DNA of 60,655 bases, counting the filler, from Dugesia japonica (taxonomy: Eukaryota), in assembly GCA_001938525.1 (NCBI GenBank). It is 6 parts of 6 records of this genome, joined end to end, with 100 filler letters (N's around TTAATTAATTAA, not from the genome) between each part and the next. Parts side by side here need not be neighbours in the genome. Positions count along the whole stretch, not along the records: positions 19,781 to 30,681 come from MQRL01599310.1; 5 more parts are not named here. One strand, given 5' to 3'. Positions 19,781-30,681 of the stretch are shown here, one piece after another; the stretch's first letter is position 1, and each line of letters opens with the position of its first letter. A model generated the notes under the pieces. The model ran no database searches and was not told the origin of the DNA. It saw only the letters and a list, made by a program, of their open reading frames with translations. A program made the position numbers and the translations under genes.

Positions 19781-22700
19781 GATTTTCTACTAGCGATAGA
19801 ATTCCTTGAAATTCTACTTTTATTTTCCACTTCTCTCTCCAAATTATCATCTCCAGATGTAAGTTCATCTTCATTTTGAGATTCACTAAACATTGCTTTA
19901 TCAAAACTCTCTCGGCGAGATAAATCTTTCAACATGGAAGTATTTTGTTCATGCTTTGATTTTCTAGATAATCTAGATTTTCTATTAGGAGCAGGCATTT
20001 GATTATCATCAATTACTTCTGATTTCTTAGTGTTCATCGATTTTCTATTAATTGATTTCCTTCCAGTTGCATTTAATTCGTTATCATCTATTTGAGACTC
20101 TACTTCTGATGAATTTGGAAAAATTTTACTAGATCTAGAAATTTTAGATTTTCTACCCAATTTTAATTTTTCTGTATTTTCTAACAATTCTGTTACTGAA
20201 TTATCACCACGAGTTATCGAATTTTCAGACTTTCTACTAACAATAGAATTCCTAGAAATGTTATTTTTATCTTCCACTTCTCCCTCCAAATTATCATCTC
20301 CAGATGTAAGTTCATCTTCATTTTGATATTCACTAAACATTGCTTTATCAGAACTCTCTCGGTGGGATAAATCGTTCAATATTGTAGGATTTTCAACAAG
20401 CATTGATTTTCTAGATAATCGAGATTTTCTACCAGATTTAACTTTTGTATTTTCTAACAATTCTGAATTATCAATACGAGTTACTGATTTATCTGATTTT
20501 CTACTAACAATAAAATTCCTTGAAATGTTTTTTTTATTTTCCACTTCTCCCTCCAAATTATCATCTCCAGATGTAAGTTCACTTTCATTTTGAGATTCAC
20601 TAAAAAGTACTTTATCAGAACTCTCACGATAAAATAAATCGTTCAGCGTGGAATTATTTTCATCATGTTTTGATTTGCTTGATAATCGAGATTTTAGACT
20701 AGAATTAAAGATTTCCTTATTATCGGATTTCTCTGACATTGCATTGTTTGACTCTCCTTCTAAATTATCATCAGCAGATGTTAGTTCCCTTTCATTTTGA
20801 GATTTACTAAGTATTACTCTTTCTATGGAAGAGTTTCGCTCATGTTTTGATTTTCTTGATAATAGAGATTTTCTACCGCAATTCATACTTTCATTTTGTA
20901 TCAAATGTACTACTGAATTATCACCACGAGTTATTGATTTACCAGATTTTCTAATACCCATAGAATTCTTTAAATTTTTGATTGTGTCTTTTACTTCGGC
21001 TTCTAAATTATCCTCTGCAGATGTAAGATCACTTTCATTTTGAGATTCACTGAACATTGCTCTATCAGAACTGTCCCTATGAGACATTTCTTTCAACATG
21101 CTAGTATTTTCGACATGATTTGATTTTCTAGATAATCGAGATTTTCGATTAGACGCAGGAATTTGATTATCTTCAGCTACTTTTGATTTTTTTATCGATT
21201 TCCTATTAATTGATTTTCTCCCAGTTGCATTTAATACGTTATCATTTGGTTGAGACTCTACTTCTGATGAATTCTCTAAAAATTTACTGGAACTTCTAGA
21301 AATTTTAGAGTTTCTGCAGGAACTCTTTTTCGCATTTTGTAACAATTCTGTTACTGAATTATCACCACGATTTATTGATTTATCGGATTTTCTACTTACA
21401 ATAGAATTCCTCGAAATGTTATTTTTATCTTCCACTTCTCCCTCGAAATTATCATCTCCAGATGTAAGTTCATCTTCATGTTGAGATTCACTAAACATTG
21501 CTTTATCAGAACGATCACTATAAGACATTTCTTTTAACATGTTAGGATTTTCAATAAGTATTGATTTTTTAGATAATCGAGATTTTCTACCCGATTTAAC
21601 ATTTGTATTTTCTAACAATTCTGAATTATCAATACGAGTTATTGATTTATCTGATTTTCTACTAACAATAGCATTCCTCGAAATGTTATTTTTATCTTCC
21701 ATCTCTCCCTCCAAGTTATCTTCTCCAGATGTACGTTCATCTTCAATTTGAGATTCACTAAACATTGCTTTATCAGAACTCTCTCGGCGAGATAAATCTT
21801 TCAACATGGAAGGATTTTCAACAAACATTGATTTTCTAGATAATCGAGATTTTCTACCAGATTTCACTTTTGTTANNNNNNNNNNNGATTTTCTACTAGC
21901 GATAGAATTCCTTGAAATTCTACTTTTATTTTCCACTTCTCTCTCCAAATTATCATCTCCCGATGTAAGTTCATCTTCATTTTGAGATTCACTAAACATC
22001 GCTTTATCAAAACTCTCTCGGCGAGATAAATCTTTCAACATGGAAGTCTTTTGTTCATGCTTTGATTTTTTAGATAATCGAGATTTTCTACCAGATTTAA
22101 CTTTGGTATTTTCTAACAATTCTGAATGATCAATACGAGTTATTGATTTATCTGATTTTCTACTAACAATAGAATTCCTTGAAATGTTATTTTTATTTTC
22201 CAATTCTCTCTCCAAATTATCATCTCCAGATGTAAGTTCATCTTCAATTTGAGATTCACTAAACATTGCTTTATCAAAACTCTCTCGGCGAGATAAATCT
22301 TTCAACATGGAAGTCTTTTGTTCATGCTTTGATTTTCTAGATAATCTAGATTTTCTATTAGGAGCAGGCATTTGATTATCATCAATTACTTCTGATTTCT
22401 TAGTGTTCATCGATTTCCTATTAATTGATTTCCTTCCAGTTGCATTTAATTCGTTATCATCTGGTTGACTTTTTGAATTTTGTAAAATTTTACTAGATCT
22501 TCTAGAAATCTTAGATTTTCTCCCATTTTGTAACAATTCTGTTACTGAATTATCACCACGAGTTATTGATTTACACGATTTTCTACTAACAATAAAATTC
22601 CTCGAAATGTTATTTTTATCTTCCACTTCTCCCTCCAAATTATCATCTCCAGATGTAAGTTCATCTTCATTTTGAGATTCACTAAACATTGCTTTATCAG

Positions 22701-25700
22701 AACTCTCTCGGCGGGATAAATCTTTCAATATTGTAGGATTTTCAACAAACATTGATTTTCTAGATAATCGAGATTTTCTACCAGATTTCACTTTCGTTAT
22801 TGATTTACCAGATTTTCTACTAGCGATAGAATTCCTTGAGATTCTAATTTTATCTTCCACTTCTCCCTCCAAATTATCATCCCCAGATGTAAGTTCATCT
22901 TCATTTTGAGATTCACTAAACATTGCTTTATCAGAACTCTCTCGGTGGGATAAATCTTTCAATATTGTAGGATTTTCAACAAGCATTGATTTTCTAGATA
23001 ATCGAGATTTTCTACCAGATTTTCTACTAGCGATTGAATTCCTTGAAATTCTAATTTTATTTTCCGTTACTTTCTCCAAATTATCATCTCCAGATGTAAG
23101 TTCACCTTCACTATGAGATTCACTAAAAAGAACTTTATCAGAATCATCTCCATGAGAAACATCTTTTAACATGGAAGAATTTTCAACAAATTTTGATTTT
23201 CTGGATAATCGAGATTTTCGATTAGAGGCAATCGATTCTTGAGACAAAACATTATTTGATTTGTTGGAATTCACTGATTTTCTACTCACTCTGCTCGGTT
23301 TATCAGATGTTAATTTCTTAGATGCTCTTGTAACTCTAGATTTCCTTTCAGATGATTTAGAGGATTTTCTGCTCAGTTTTCCACTTGAAGATTCCTCTTC
23401 AATCAAACTAATTCTGGATTTTGATTTTCTCGATTTATTCAGTTTGTTATTATTTAACAATTCCTCATTGTTATTGAACAATTCAGTTAAACCGTCCATA
23501 CACACTGACTGTCTTCCTTTCATTGCCTCTTTCATTGATTTATTCTTTGCTTTATTCACTGCTTTCTTTTTTAATTTCCTACCGATCTTCAATGAAGGTT
23601 TATTTGTTTTAGTAACGGGATTAAGAAGTTCGAAAGGGAAAACCGTATTGGATATTCTCGATAATCTAATTAATTTTTTGAACGCNCTCAAATTGCTCGA
23701 AATTTCATTATTGTTATCGGTATTGTTGTCAGTGACAAGTTTCGACATTTTGGTAATTTGCTCACTTTCCAGCTGTTTGATATTCTCCAAATTCATGGAT
23801 TCGTTAGTGCTAAGCCTTTTATCGAATTTAGATGACTGTCGGACGACTTGGCCATCTAAATCAGCATTTTCCGATATCGATTTTTCCGAGTTCTTAGGAA
23901 TCGAGTTTTCATTTTCTACAGAATATTCGTATAAATCCATACTGTTCTTCTTTGGTGCACTAATTTTTTTGGAGATCTTTATGGAAGAATCGCTGGTAGA
24001 CAATCGATTTTTTGCTAATACTTTATCAGTAAATGAATCATTGATGTCGTCACTTTCAGAAGGAGATGAATATGTATTATCATCATTTATCGATTTCTCT
24101 AGAGATGTGTCACGTGAGATAACGCTATACTGATTTCCCAACGATTTCTGATCTTGATCAGGTAATTCATTTTCATCATCTGCGGATCCTGTAAAATCGA
24201 GTAAAGATTTCATTGGAGTGGCTCCCTTCTTCAAGGGTTGAATTGGAGGCAATTCTTTATCGAATTGCTCGGGGCTTAAATTAGGCCCAAATGAAACATG
24301 TCGACGAAGTTCTTCACTTTTCATTTGACTTAAATTCAATTTGCTTTTTCTCTTATTCTTATCGATCATTTTGTTTTGTATAGGAGTTACAAATGGACGG
24401 ACATTCAATCGTTTCACTGGAATAACCGTACTGATTTTAGTACTTGACACTGTTATAGGAGATATAGTAGGACTATTGGTTTCGTGGCATAATACCGAAT
24501 AAGTCGGGTGTTTCGGTGTCGACACAACAGGTTGACGTTGAAATTTCTTTAGTGGAACGACTGGACTGTTAACAACCTAGAAATTTCAATCATTTAATTG
24601 TTTAGTTTTAGGGAATTATATCGTTAATTTATATCAGCTTTTAATTTTATATCAACCCATCTGTACCCATCTGTACCCATTTGTACCCATCTGTATGCAT
24701 TTGAGTACGCTTTAGAAATACGAGAATGGAGTTTTTGGATCATTCAGAAGGTAATGGTGGNNNNNNNNNNNNNNNNNNNNNNNNNNNNNNNNNNNNNNNN
24801 NNTCAACTAATTAACTTGTTACTATGGACATACTCTCATTGCAATACAACAGAAACAAATGAATGGCGTAACATGCAGAAATGGTTCTAGAAGTCACCAA
24901 GTACTATCTCAAAGATAAAGAAAACTACTCATGACCTTCTGCTGTAGATGACGATGTTTGGTGACAAAGACCTTAAGGTAAAGTGCGTAAGAGATAACTG
25001 CAAATATGCGTGTTTCGTAATCAAAAGCTTTCGAACATCTGAAACTAATTGACAAAGTCAAGAAACTGTATAAATGGGTGATCTTACGGGAATCCAAATG
25101 AAAAAAAACTCTCTCCTCGAAAGATACTCCACCGATACAAAATCTAAGTTAGGATATGAAACCTGGCTCCAACCGATCACTTCTTGAATGTGAGAAATCA
25201 ATACGGTAAAGAAACAGCACGTGGTAAATTTGCATAGAATCCAATGATAATTATTTCTAATAAAACTTTTGTAATGGAATTAATTTCAAAATCCGCCATC
25301 ACTTTCCGAATGATCTAATATTAGTAAATTGTGCCTACTGTACTCCTTTGAGTACCGTATTTTCCAGCAAATAACGCGCAGGTCAATCTAGACTTCGCTG
25401 GCTTTCCCGGGTGTATACCATACATTATACACATTATACATATACAATATACACCTAAGAAAGGTGAAAGTTAAGTCTAGACCAACCTGCGGGTTACATG
25501 CGGGAAAATACGGAACGCTTCATTAATCTGGGAATGCAGTAATAAAATGTTAATAAAATGTTAACCACGAGCCAATTTTATTCAATAAATGTCTGTCTAA
25601 CACTGGTTCTCAACCTTTTTAGTATTAAGCACTGCTTTTAACCGGAAATTTAATAATTACTGCTGTTTATCCATAATAATAATAATAATAATATGTAAAT

Positions 25701-27273
25701 CATTGCTTGAATTTAATCGATTGCTCGCTCTTGAAAATAATGAAATCGTCTGCAATGCTGCTGTTGTTAACGGTTTACATATTAATTTCATGTTTATTCT
25801 AAGACACATTCTAAGATTTAATGTCGATTCTTATTAGTATTATTAGTTTTCTAGATCAGTGGTTGCCAACTCGTCGTCCGCGAATACTTTCCGTTAAAAA
25901 TGGTATATTTAAATCGATCTGATTCAGTTGATTATTTAAGAAAATATCGTTATATTCGCTATTTAACATCAGTTGCTAATACTAGGATATATTTTATGAT
26001 ATCCTGGATACTTTAAAGGTTCGAAGAATCAATTCCAAAGAGTTTTAGATCTGAAGAGAAAACTTATAAGGAAAGAAATCTTAGGATTTTGTTATTTTCA
26101 GCCAGGAAACTATTAAACAAATTAAACAAAGATTCCTAAGATTTTTTATATTTAAAATCTAAACTTGTAAACTTTTGGTAAAAGAATTAAATGTTAATGT
26201 AGGATTGAATACGAATAGAAGAGACAAAATAGCGTTATCTTACTGTGCTTTTCAATGGATATCTCTAGAAAGATTCCAGAACTTCGGGAGTTTTAATTAG
26301 TTGGTGGGGAAGTCCCAAAGGTTGGCGACGACTGATCTAGACTATGGATTCTAAATTACGGTAAATGTTACGATTCAGTTTCGTTTCGTAAAATTGTATT
26401 TAATTACAAATTTATTATAAAATATTCAAGTAATTATCAATCGTTATTAAACTAATTGTCAAATTGAAGGCCAATTTCAAATAATACACATTGCCTCATA
26501 AAGCAATGTCAATGAACGCAACCAGTCAAAAAATATCGATCGATGTTGACGGATTNNNNNNNNNNNNNNNNNNNNNNNNNNNNNNNNNNNNNNNNNNNNN
26601 NNNNNNNNATTAAAGTAGAAATTAGAAATAAATATCCGATAAATTAACTAAAGAACAACAATTTTCATTCTTTATCTTTAAGTCTGTAATGGAAAATTTT
26701 CCAATTATCTAACAGTAATTATTTAACCACAAATCAAATTTCGCGAATTACGTAACAACTTACGCTAGATTATTATTTAATCCCATAAGTAAATAATCAA
26801 ATAATAATTTACTAAAATATCTGTGTAAAGAATTATTATTAAATTTAGAATTCTCGAGTCAAATTAATTAAAATATAAAATTACCCTCAAATTATCTGGA
26901 AACCAAATCGACATAGAGGGATATTGAAATCGAAATGACCGAGTACCAAGAGTAAACACGGAATCGTGATTAAGAATACATGAAGATAGAACTTGTCTTC
27001 CTTCAATAAACGTTTTATATTGATCTGAACCTGTATGTGTTAGGTATGCATGTTTGTCATCATCAAGCCTCAAAATGCAATGATTGGAAGCAATTGAACT
27101 AGAATTAATACAACAATCGCATTCCTCGTCACTAAAACATTTTTGTGTTAAACTTTACGTGTATATTTAATTTTATACCTCCCAATGGTGAGTGATTCAG
27201 TAAACCACTTCAATGATGCACCACTTGTTCCATTATCATTAAGGAACGTTATTTGACCATTAAATTTAACCAT
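19781..27273 (-). CDS. MKI67: Ki-67-like proliferation marker protein: join(27273-27179, 27131-26885, 24576-<19781), 3'-partial
   Basis: Exons 1-2 give an N-terminal FHA domain (MVKFNGQITFLNDNGTSG..TIGSDEECD..NHC..LNHDSVFTLGTRSFRFQ; cf. Ki-67 LKHGDVITIIDRSFRYE). Exon 3 has the PP1-binding RRHVSFGPNLSPEQFDKELPPIQPLKKGATP (cf. RRRVSFGGHLRPELFDENLPPNTPLKRGEAP), one MDGLTELF (FKELF-like) motif and a long disordered repeat exon. Splice phases are compatible (2, then 0). Confidence 0.88.
24734..25316 (+). mobile_element. Internally deleted mariner relic in Ki-67 intron 2
   Basis: TIRs ggatcattcagaaggtaatggtgg / ccgccatcactttccgaatgatct; remnants FEHLKLIDKVKKLYKWV and LGYET. Confidence 0.65.
25355..25513. 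mobile_element. Pogo/Tigger-like MITE
   Basis: TA|ccgtattttccagcaaataacgcgcaggtcaatctagact ... agtctagaccaacctgcgggttacatgcgggaaaatacgg inverted repeats. Confidence 0.75.
25857..26334. mobile_element. hAT (Charlie-like) MITE
   Basis: TIRs cagtggttgccaac / gttggcgacgactg; flanks ttctagat/atctagac match the NTCTAGAN target preference. Confidence 0.7.
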
Positions 27274-28257
27274 ATGTTACCTAAATACTATAGATTACAA
27301 AAAAACTTAAAAATTAAAAACAAACCTAAAAAGAAATAAAGATTATATATTAATAAAATCGAAAATAAGAAATATCTGGTTTATTTAAACAATACTTTGT
27401 TTTTGAAATAAAGAATCATTTTAAAGTATTTATTTTTAAATTAATTCGAAAATATTAGACTATTTGATGGTAAAATTAAATTGTTTTCTTTAATTTTAGA
27501 TAGAATAATTTTTTTAATAATTAACTGCATTGATATTTTATGAATTAAAAATTATTTGCATCAATAAAAAAAATTATAGTGCAAAGTATTTACAAAAGTA
27601 AAAAAGATATTTTTAGATTTTTAAGCATATAATTTTTTTAATTTTTATTGAAATGGCATAAATGCAAAATAAATCAAAATTTAACTAATTAAATTGTTAT
27701 TAATATAAAAAACCAGTAAATTTCAATAATCATTGTCCTTAGTTTTTTGACAATGAATTTTTATGGAACTGAATACATTTCAAGAATTTTAAAATTGCAG
27801 TAATGACTGCAAATTGATAATATTGCACTTCTTAAATTTTAAAATAATTTTTTTGGTATTAAAACATTGTTGGGTGAATGATGAATAAATAAGATGCATG
27901 TATAGAAACGAGTAAACCAACCACGAAGAAAAAGTAAAGTATGGCTGAATTAAAAGAGTTGATTATATTGATCATATAACGCCATTAATACATTCCTTTG
28001 AATGATGAAATATTGTAATGTGTAGAATCCAATTTTTTAGAATAATATTGAAATTATTAGTATTAAAAATTTTCAATTTTTATGAATTTTTGTTTCTTAT
28101 TTCATTGTAATTTTGTACAATAATAACATTATTATTATCATTATTATTATTATTATTCATTATAATTATTATTATTATTTATTATAATTATTATTATTAT
28201 TTATTTATTATTGTTATTATTATTAATTTTTTCCAATTATGATGAACCCATAAAAAC

Positions 28258-30329
28258 AGTAGGCAGGTGCGTCATCACGTGACAAAAAATCAATAATTGC
28301 CTAAATTTTTTGAAAAATGTAGGTTTTATGCATTTTTAGACTATAAATGTTTTTTAATTTTTATATATTTTTATGGATTTATTGTGTTTTATAAATTTGT
28401 AATTTACTATCACCATTAGTGTTTCCGTTGTAATAACCACTTCATGTTTTTTAAAAAAAAATTTCGTTTTTTTGCAATTCACAACAAAATATGAAAATAG
28501 CTATTTTTTCATCTTTTTTGGAAATTTTCAAAACAAGTTCCTAAATAAAGTATAACTAAATAATATCAAAAAAATGGCTAGTAATTTATTTGTCTGTGAG
28601 AAATATAATAAAAATTCTAGTAAATGATAGAATTTAAATGAGCATAGAAAACATTATTTTATTAGAAAAACCAGAATATTTTGATTGTAATTAATGATGT
28701 AGGGATTTAAATCACTATCCGCACAAATATTTCATTTTAGAACATATTTAATAAAGAAAATTTCTAAAGATGATACAAGATGTGAAACATGTAACATATG
28801 TTTTATTAGAACAACTGAATATCAATATCATTTAAAAAGTAATGATCATTTAAAAGGGATAATGAAGAATTGTTGAAAATAAAATTTAAATGAAAATAAT
28901 TATTGAAAATTATATTTATTAGGATGATATAAAATTGGAAGAATATCAAAAGATTTCAATAAAAATCGACATGATCCAACACTTCTTTTATTTAAATAAA
29001 GTGGTTATATATTAGAAAAATATAAATTCTAATTCTTATTTTTGATTTTGGCAAATGCGGAAGATAAATATTTATTTTCAAAACTTGATAAGTCAATAGA
29101 AGTTCAAATGACTTTTACAAGCAATGGGAGAGTTTTATATAATACAAAAAAAATATTAGATGGATTTTATAATTATTTAAATACAAAAATTAAAAAAGCG
29201 GAAGTTCGTGAATCTGGGTTAATTCATCAAAAGTATATCAAATTTTATTATCATTATCTGAATGTTTCTTTAATTTGCTGTTTCTATTTAAAACTTTGAT
29301 TTACCTCTAAACCAATAATTAACCCCACAAATAAGGATAATAAATGTTTCTTTTGGGCGTTATTAGAATTTTNNNNNNNNNNNNNNNNNNNNNNNNNNNN
29401 NNNNNNNNNNNNNNNNNNNNAATAAAATAGGTTTAATAACATATTATACAAATCTATTTGGAGAGGAGCTCAGCGTTTTCTTGGAAAATGAAACTAATTT
29501 AAACTATACAAGTGAATTAAAATCCCATTATATTCTATGTACAGATGTTAGCACATTTTTAAAAAATAAAAAAGTATTTTCATGCTAGAATTGTTTAACA
29601 GCATTTAGTTATCAAAAAGCATTAGATAAACATCATATATTATGTTTAAATGATTAAACGGCCGAAAATATATTTCCTACTGAAGAATATTTAAAATATA
29701 ATAAAAGTGTATTTTAAAAATTGTCGTTTGAAATAATTGTAGATTTCGAAACATATTATATTAGAGAAACTTTATTAAAAATGAGAACAAATTTAGAAAC
29801 ACAGAAACTCTATTCACACAGAAATTATGATTTTTGGAATATATATCAAAAGTAATTATCAAAATTTAGTAAAATTGCAATATATAGAACATCATGGTAA
29901 AAATTCAGATAAATATTTGTTCGATCAGTTATTAAAATTAAAGAATGAATTTAAAACCATATTATAACTAATTTATCAATGAGAGATAAACCAACAGAAT
30001 TAGAAGATTGTTAAAAATCGTATACTATGGAAATCGAAATCTTCTTTTAAAAAACTAAATCAATTACATGAAAATTCAATGGTTTGCAATTATGATCATC
30101 GTAATGGGAAATTTAAATCTTGGGCATGCAACAAATGCAATTTAAGTGCAAAGAATGCATTTGTTCCATTGTACTATCAAAAGTAAAGCAACTAAGATAT
30201 TTTTAGAATTATTTAAAAAAAGGAAGAAATAACAAAAATAATGTAAAACCATTAGCGAAAACATAAAGAATATATTTCATTATAAATTGGATGTATAATA
30301 ATATCAGATTCATTTAGATCAGTGTTGTC
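28258..30329 (+). mobile_element. Left end of a third Polinton-like element: AGTAGG terminus plus decayed C2H2-ZnF/pPolB N-terminal half
   Basis: agtaggcaggtgcgtcatcacgtgac at 28258; zinc finger CETCNICFIRTTEYQYHLKSNDH (~28781); EVRESG; NPTNKDNKCFFWALL; IVDFET; DHRNGKFKSWACNKCNL; SDSFR. Many stops. Confidence 0.75.
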
Positions 30330-30681
30330 AGTAGGTAGATAGTGGCGCACTAGCCCACCCCCCCACCCCCCCGTGGAAAAATTTTTTTTTCGACAAATTT
30401 TTTTGCCGATAATTTTTTAGGTAGATAGTGGAACACTAGCCCACCCCCCACCCCCCCGTGGGAAAATTTTTTTTTTCGACAAATTTTTTTGCCGATAATT
30501 TTTTAGGTAGATAGTGGCGCACTAGCCCACCCCCACCCCCCACCCCCCCGTGGGAAAATTTTTTTTGACAATTTTTTTTTTGACAAATTTTTTTTTTGAC
30601 AATTTTTTTTCAAGAATTTTTTTTTTCAACAAATTTTTTTTTTAAAATTTGTTTATTTTACTTTGCGCGCGAATTTAAATC
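30330..30681 (+). mobile_element. AGTAG-type terminus with three ~90-bp tandem C-rich units, interrupting the pPolB relic
   Basis: aggtagatagtggcgcactagcccacccccc(c)acccccccgtggaaaa.. x3. The first 21 bp are the exact reverse complement of 10826-10846. Confidence 0.7.

Follow-up and report, generated by a model that had tools for sequence, protein, structure and literature searches.

A probable Ki-67 homologue of Dugesia japonica with a built-in charge-block repeat array

A gene with FHA and PP1-docking parts

The window analyzed here is a stretch of 60,655 nucleotides (nt; filler included) of Dugesia japonica DNA (assembly GCA_001938525.1), made of six parts from six records, and the gene described below lies on the minus strand of the piece at positions 19781-30681 of that stretch, which comes from record MQRL01599310.1. 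Two exons encoding an FHA domain are followed by a large exon that encodes a PP1-docking motif and a long array of repeats in which basic and acidic blocks are paired. The piece probably holds the 5' two-thirds of a Ki-67 homologue with a charge-block array built into its sequence, the function being read from the architecture. The coding features are as follows.

27179..27273, minus strand: coding exon 1, beginning with the ATG at 27273 and comprising 31 codons plus 2 nt; encodes the first part of the FHA domain and is collinear with the P0001 protein N-terminus
27132..27178, minus strand: intron 1, 47 nt, GT-AG; joint 27131|27179, CT..AC on the plus strand
26885..27131, minus strand: coding exon 2, main part of the FHA domain (Pfam FHA, PF00498)
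24577..26884, minus strand: intron 2, 2308 nt, GT-AG; contains two assembly gaps and a repeated element
19781..24576, minus strand: large coding exon, open up to the edge of the piece; the C-terminal part of the gene lies beyond the piece
24208..24306, minus strand: PP1-docking motif, RVxF-type RHVSF with a Ki-67/RepoMan-type extension (Pfam PP1_bind, PF15276, E 6.5e-11, above cutoff)

Exons 1 and 2 lie upstream of the large exon on the same strand and have canonical splice sites, and the frame of the large exon runs from 24576 to 19783 for 1598 codons without a stop, against 90 and 297 stops in the two alternative frames of that strand. The coverage of run X14 is RNA-like: its depth is high over exons (∼36 over the large exon, 15 to 26 over the FHA exons) and low over the intron (0 to 3), compared with the even depth of DNA run X2 throughout. 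Joint 27131|27179 is present in an RNA-like contig of X14, where its shorter side spans 107 letters, and runs X22 and X23 each supply one raw RNA read that crosses it. Joint 24576|26885 (placed at 24574|26883, cut +2, with CT..AC ends) is present in an X14 contig and absent from X2; it matches the predicted splice sites exactly, in phase 0, and P0001 (UniParc UPI00060F8460, 1839 amino acids [aa]) is collinear across it. A further X14 contig (23112-24577) extends from the start of the large exon into the first repeat unit. An earlier, sequence-only reading of this DNA had proposed a Ki-67 gene and depended on the large exon being spliced to the FHA exons; the X14 joints connect them, and the FHA and PP1/repeat parts belong to one expressed transcript.

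The two conserved parts are of the Ki-67 type. The protein encoded by exon 2 matches the Pfam FHA family with an E value of 2.6e-8 and 34.6 bits (cutoff 20.7), and the best solved matches to the FHA domain of its orthologue P0001 are those of human Ki-67 (2AFF and 1R21, E 1e-4), which rank above kinesin FHA domains. The PP1-docking motif, also anticipated by the sequence-only reading, is borne out by the PF15276 match together with alignments to PP1-bound peptides of human Ki-67 (5J28, E 1.5e-6) and RepoMan (5IOH, E 1.3e-6). We take the serine in this motif to be the position at which Aurora B blocks PP1 binding in Ki-67 and RepoMan, and note it as a lead.

An exhaustive search with residues 1-235 of P0001 gave 222 matches at E ≤ 1e-3, many of them in two stretches, and in those that were checked the stretches are the FHA domain and the PP1 motif. 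The named matches include annotated Ki-67 proteins: among vertebrates, the Ki-67 of Xenopus, gecko, snake, several fishes, and camel; among others, flatworm proteins (Hymenolepis, Schistosoma, and Trichobilharzia), a spider "Antigen KI-67," a snail protein, and a Styela Ki-67-like protein. The N-terminus of the window protein ranks the same proteins, with those of flatworms first by a margin too narrow to settle the phylum (3e-26, versus 2e-22 for gecko), and judged by the FHA/PP1 part these are its closest relatives. Word-index protein searches found only P0001 with the N-terminal part of the window protein, and only P0001 itself with P0001 residues 1-235. P0001 is on no contig of the searched collection, and its cluster has a single member. 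Three short Logan proteins (P0004, P0011, and P0017) were considered as close relatives and set aside, being rich in serine or threonine followed by proline (S/T-P) and only 27% to 29% identical to P0001.

Some further observations concern the noncoding parts of the gene. Just 5' of the ATG, an RNA-like X14 contig jumps from 27285 to 27331-27360, skipping 45 nt (27286-27330); no GT-AG pair fits this skip, which may be an insertion/deletion difference in a very A+T-rich leader and not an intron. Within intron 2, the region 24672-25439 has a DNA contig depth 2 to 4 times that of its flanks, and many contigs continue into unrelated sequence at 24860, 25053-25055, 25189, and 25247, a pattern suggestive of a dispersed repeat or the remains of a transposon; none of the open reading frames (ORFs) of this region matches Pfam above cutoff. 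At 24655-24703, ∼80 nt 5' of the large exon acceptor, lie ∼4 copies of a 10-nt unit, ACCCATCTGT.

The repeat array and its assembly

The array occupies the 3' part of the large exon within the piece, and its features are listed here with two that bear on its interpretation.

19781..23223, minus strand: charge-block repeat array, present in the assembly as 12 main units plus 3 spacer modules
22360..22524, minus strand: spacer module 1, part of a higher-order repeat
21151..21315, minus strand: spacer module 2, part of a higher-order repeat
19987..20157, minus strand: spacer module 3, part of a higher-order repeat
23476..23499, minus strand: MDGLTELF motif; P0001 has QGVQELF at the equivalent place
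21876..21886, no strand: assembly gap of 11 N within unit 6, at a written length that keeps the frame

When split at the basic motif, the array yields 12 main units of 59 to 92 aa, each with RKS-rich basic blocks and one acidic block, in agreement with the earlier count of at least 12 paired units; the strings quoted for them are present verbatim. Aligned units have a mean column identity of 72%, the most conserved stretches being the R-K-S-R-L-S-R-K-S block and the F-S-E-S-Q...E-L-T-S-G-D-D-N-L-E block, and their DNA copies are 77% to 97% identical. Tandem Repeats Finder reports periods of 207, 234, and 267 nt. The longer spacer, DN(E/V)LNATGRKSINRKS, recurs three times as had been described, at 22411-22458, 21196-21243, and 20038-20085, ∼1.2 kb apart, and because segments of up to 922 nt align at 84% to 91% identity with offsets of ∼1.17 and 2.37 kb, the array contains a three-fold higher-order repeat. 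The ratio of nonsynonymous to synonymous substitution (dN/dS) between units ranges from 0.15 to 0.93 (median, ∼0.6); none of the ten pairs reaches 1, a sign of weak purifying selection. The array is predicted to be disordered, and an AlphaFold model of two units (single-sequence run) is consistent with this, with a predicted local distance difference test (pLDDT) score of 52, a predicted template modeling (pTM) score of 0.11, and no secondary structure.

The units do not resemble the 122-aa Ki-67 repeat with its FKELF motif, as the sequence-only reading had held. The Pfam scan for the Ki-67 repeat family (K167R), for which a negative was expected, gave no match in the window protein at E ≤ 1. 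A custom model was built from 15 repeats of mammalian-type Ki-67 library hits, 10 of them from camel P0117, and run with filters off (--max); the mammalian comparison throughout is with this camel Ki-67 from the library search, not human Ki-67. The model detects the repeats of gecko and Xenopus and scores -2.8 bits on the window protein and -2.7 bits on P0001. In profile-profile comparisons with hhalign, the probability is 0.1% for the window units against the mammalian-type repeat alignment and 0.5%, with no alignment, against the P0001 unit, and a word search with the array finds no relative at E ≤ 0.01. The single MDGLTELF motif that precedes the array is at exactly the position given for it, but as a Ki-67 repeat motif it found no support: it scored nothing in the repeat model, and its likeness to the L-x-G-F-K-E-L-F core of the Ki-67 repeat is by eye only.

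At the sequence level the array is therefore best described as lineage-specific; it may have evolved independently or diverged past recognition, two histories that the sequence does not tell apart. Units differ widely and turn over among Ki-67 homologues in general, with lengths of 29 aa in Xenopus and 15 aa in Ciona (10.64898/2026.06.18.733134). On our reading, the units would have arisen within the lineage by repeated tandem duplication and homogenization. A separate observation is that the camel-repeat model also finds repeat-like stretches in P0016 (Styela clava, E 1e-8) and, weakly, in P0002 (Hymenolepis diminuta, E 2e-5, in a small database and with a proline-rich composition), which hints that the vertebrate-type repeat may predate vertebrates.

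The number of units needs separate consideration, as the array contains an assembly gap and ends at the edge of the piece. The last full codon upstream of the gap ends at 21889 and the first downstream starts at 21873, so that 2 nt, 11 N, and 2 nt add up to 15 nt and the written sequence stays in frame; at this length the gap-containing unit is 78 aa, equal to the short-form unit 2. The flank of the gap at 21887-22090 is 97.5% identical to the end of the piece at 19781-19984. Both start at one repeat register, past which units continue in at least three different ways, and because of this shared register and the near-identical flanks, the gap and the end of the piece appear to be one branch point at which the assembler broke twice. 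The array could accordingly be in part a product of assembly, with the number and order of units wrong and near-identical copies left unresolved by the assembler, and we give this nearly even standing, somewhat below an even chance. Beyond the coincidence of gap and edge, it is favored by an uneven depth over the array (32 to 233), by the lack of any contig, among those listed, that bridges 21876-21886, and by an alternative joint, 22468|22524, seen in both DNA and RNA contigs. Against this, the units differ by 3% to 23% in DNA, many contigs from independent runs were placed on the array, and its frame is open throughout; moreover, the objection touches the unit count only and not the existence or nature of the array. 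We conclude that the count of 12 describes the assembly and is unsafe as a copy number, and that continuity across the gap is putative.

With respect to joint 22468|22524 itself, the X14 RNA-like and X2 DNA contigs that carry it pass over 55 nt where spacer module 1 begins. It is not splicing, because it is also present in DNA, and it is probably an allele, a paralogous copy of the spacer, or a local assembly error.

Charge pattern, phosphorylation sites, and the remainder of the piece

In the mammalian model, mitotic phosphorylation by the cyclin-dependent kinase (CDK) CDK1 gives the Ki-67 repeats alternating charge blocks, which lead to condensation at the chromosome periphery. In the window protein, the blocks are encoded directly. 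The consensus 89-aa unit has successive charge segments of +5, 0, -9, +4, -3, and +2, and because basic blocks (+5 and +4) flank the acidic block (-9), the array is a block polyampholyte without modification. Its kappa is ∼0.25. The variance of net charge in 15-aa windows along the array is 12.2, compared with 5.5 ± 0.7 in shuffles, a comparison whose z-scores overstate the significance, given that the 12 units derive from each other by copying. The camel Ki-67 array has a variance of 4.8 unmodified and 5.5 when a charge of -2 is placed on every S/T-P site, so the blocks of the window array (12.2) are stronger than those of a fully CDK-phosphorylated mammalian array. The proposal that the blocks are constitutively encoded is supported by these values.

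The near absence of S/T-P sites that had been reported for the array also holds, with 0 sites in 1145 aa. We considered whether this is significant in itself and rejected the idea, as the array has just 13 prolines and only ∼3 sites are expected by chance from its composition. All eight S/T-P sites of the model are elsewhere, ∼100 aa downstream of the FHA domain.

24064..24567, minus strand: segment of the model (aa 118-285) to which its 8 S/T-P sites are confined; surrounds the PP1 motif and contains one block that is well conserved in P0001

For comparison we assembled a set of 125 proteins, consisting of 124 library hits of ≥900 aa (P0001 included) and the window model. The window protein and P0001 rank first and second in S/T-P sparsity, with one site per 213 and 204 aa, respectively, compared with a median of 30 and a next value of 74. 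They also have the lowest proline fractions of the set (2.3% in the window protein), and their ratios of observed to expected S/T-P sites are 0.93 and 0.94, against a median of 2.2. In charge segregation, the window protein ranks 4th and P0001 ranks 1st.

These figures bear on whether the array is low-complexity sequence that has expanded in an A+T-rich genome, evolving fast and for the most part neutrally, with its blockiness and lack of S/T-P sites being side effects of composition and copying. We consider this unlikely. It fits the dN/dS of ∼0.6 between units, the observed/expected ratio of 0.93 with a proline content of only 2.3%, the failure of the units to align even to P0001, the lack of relatives of the array in the word search, and the wide differences in repeat units among Ki-67 homologues (10.64898/2026.06.18.733134). 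However, although the window and P0001 arrays cannot be aligned, both keep the order of basic, hydrophobic, and acidic elements and both are near the top of the 125 in charge segregation; the frame is open over 4.8 kb with dN/dS below 1 in every pair; and charge clustering is conserved across homologues (10.64898/2026.06.18.733134).

A second question is whether phosphorylation could control the array in a direction opposite to that of vertebrate Ki-67, with CK2-type sites deepening the acidic blocks, Aurora/PKA-type R-x-S phosphorylation erasing the basic blocks, and PP1 docked in cis reversing these effects, as the sequence-only reading proposed. The array has 92 [RK]x[ST] and 66 [ST]xx[DE] motifs, the RKS-triplet serines do not vary from unit to unit, these triplets are the sole element shared with the P0001 unit, and the PP1 motif is real. 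By arithmetic, the variance in 35-aa windows, 27 in the unmodified array, falls to 9.8 when -2 is placed on the 92 [RK]x[ST] sites, which reduces the positive blocks from 14 to 0, and rises to 52.8 when it is placed on the 66 [ST]xx[DE] sites. Nonetheless, RKS-rich and acidic blocks yield such motif counts automatically, and these values do no more than restate that composition; the stricter R-x-S-hydrophobic form is matched by only 26 sites, whose phosphorylation hardly alters blockiness; and invariance among recently duplicated units is a weak guide to selection. Inverted control by Aurora/PKA and CK2 is thus speculation drawn solely from motif counts, and we think it quite unlikely. A broader scenario, which we judge doubtful but a little less so, is that a sparsely sampled animal lineage, that of the window protein and P0001, made CDK-gated blocks permanent and dropped the CDK sites of the repeats. 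Condensation of the coat at the chromosome periphery would then be constitutive, or else basophilic kinases would switch it through the RKS triplets, opposed by docked PP1.

Runs of N lie in the piece at 21876-21886 (described above), 23686, 24761-24802, 26556-26608, and 29373-29420, and the G+C content is ∼30% over 19781-24500 and 16% to 23% over 27300-30300. An (ATT) run of ∼31 copies lies at 28128-28225, and within 30332-30654 an 86-nt tandem repeat with C-rich cores is followed by T-rich 15- to 16-nt repeats at the end of the piece. Several short ORFs are present on the plus strand at 29042-30232, in a stretch of 20% G+C; one has a subthreshold match to Endonuclease_7 (E 0.027) and may be a decayed mobile-element fragment, and Pfam searches of the ORFs at 29042-30183 and within the intron gave no match above cutoff.

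The window protein among Ki-67 homologues

Several features that define Ki-67 are found together in the window protein: an N-terminal FHA domain, a downstream PP1-docking motif, their presence in one transcript, and a long, mostly disordered repeat region. The highly basic composition with many CDK sites reversing the charge is not, as the net charge is +46 over 1707 aa and there are 8 S/T-P sites. We therefore asked whether the gene might not encode a Ki-67 homologue at all, but another FHA protein with a chance PP1 motif or a relative of RepoMan/CDCA2. The lack of a Ki-67 repeat match, the near-neutral and CDK-site-poor composition, which is unlike typical Ki-67, and a PP1 motif that matches RepoMan as well as Ki-67 speak for such an assignment. 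Yet RepoMan, which has the PP1 motif, lacks an FHA domain, whereas here the FHA domain is spliced to the PP1 exon; the best solved matches of the FHA domain and many named library hits are Ki-67; and an N-terminal FHA domain, PP1 motif, and long repeat-bearing disordered region constitute the Ki-67 architecture (10.64898/2026.06.18.733134). We regard a non-Ki-67 identity as very improbable.

As a Ki-67 homologue, the protein would probably act at the chromosome periphery and in the nucleolus, with its long, charged, disordered region forming a brush or condensate, as in vertebrate Ki-67. Its charge blocks would be hard-wired, with CDK input, if any, confined to the region of the PP1 site, and the C-terminus outside the piece would tether the protein to chromatin, the P0001 counterpart having RGRPKK, AT-hook-like repeats. 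A number of points weigh against this reading. First, a Ki-67-like function is inferred from architecture, and the reading frame leaves the piece at 19781, before any C-terminal chromatin-binding region, so that tethering is inferred from P0001 only, in which three stretches score 14.9 bits with Pfam AT_hook, under the cutoff of 17.4. Second, joint 24576|26885 is seen in one contig with 27 letters on its shorter side, under the 31-letter rule of the tool used, and raw RNA runs X22 and X23 contribute only 2 reads each. Third, most homologues are strongly basic, and the nearly neutral window protein could behave differently. Finally, in addition to the inflated shuffle statistics mentioned above, the lack of S/T-P sites need not be selected, because proline is low and the genome A+T-rich (observed/expected, 0.93); low proline in such a genome is a mundane contributor to S/T-P scarcity.

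If the Ki-67 reading is correct, the homologue is a natural variant in which the charge-blockiness model can be tested, having blocks stronger than those of the fully phosphorylated mammalian array and no CDK sites in the repeats. It raises the questions of whether condensation is constitutive, whether chromosome individualization is kept, and what switches the array off at mitotic exit. It also suggests that S/T-P sites throughout the protein and a basic net charge, found in all or most surveyed Ki-67 homologues, respectively, are not universal.

Non-vertebrate Ki-67 homologues have been described in tunicates, molluscs, insects, flatworms, fungi, and others in a preprint survey of June 2026, in which they are recognized through the FHA domain and PP1 motif only and have disordered, lineage-specific repeats with conserved charge clustering (10.64898/2026.06.18.733134). 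Because such homologues and their charge clustering were already reported there, the gain made here is incremental. All surveyed homologues have S/T-P sites, at densities ranging between one per 8 and one per 128 aa, and they are mostly basic, with a charge that reverses upon CDK phosphorylation (10.64898/2026.06.18.733134). In contrast, the window protein and P0001 have ∼1 S/T-P site per 210 aa, none in the repeats and without enrichment over composition, and together, as read from their sequences, they extend the known range in this respect, in their near-neutral charge, and in having the strongest intrinsic charge segregation.

P0001 is the only close relative. It is 40% identical to the window protein over the searched N-terminal 460 residues of the large exon, its FHA and PP1 motifs have the same spacing, and in both proteins an L-x-G-x-x-E-L-F motif precedes an S/T-P-free array whose units open with GRKSR..RKS and end in an acidic run. 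The P0001 unit is 42 aa and 91% homogeneous, with the order GRKSRKS, hydrophobic patch, and acidic run and with 0 S/T-P sites, and its array carries a net negative charge of -47 to -55, according to where its limits are set. Given that units of both proteins open with GRKSR..RKS, the two arrays could plausibly share an origin. P0001 is full length and has a second array of ∼45-aa units at residues ∼1290-1620, each with an AT-hook-like RGRPKK or RGRQKK; this may be a chromatin-binding tail that replaces the vertebrate C-terminal domain, with the window counterpart lying beyond the edge of the piece.

RepoMan/CDCA2 shares the PP1-docking family PF15276 with the window protein, but has neither an FHA domain nor such a repeat array. 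Vertebrate Ki-67 (camel, gecko, and Xenopus) shares the N-terminal FHA domain, the downstream RVxF-type PP1 motif, and very long disordered repeats with segregated charges. Its 122-aa repeat has no detectable similarity to the 59- to 92-aa units of the window, and the camel array has 72 S/T-P sites where the window array has none. Whereas vertebrate Ki-67 is strongly basic, the window protein is nearly neutral, and its charge blocks are present without phosphorylation.

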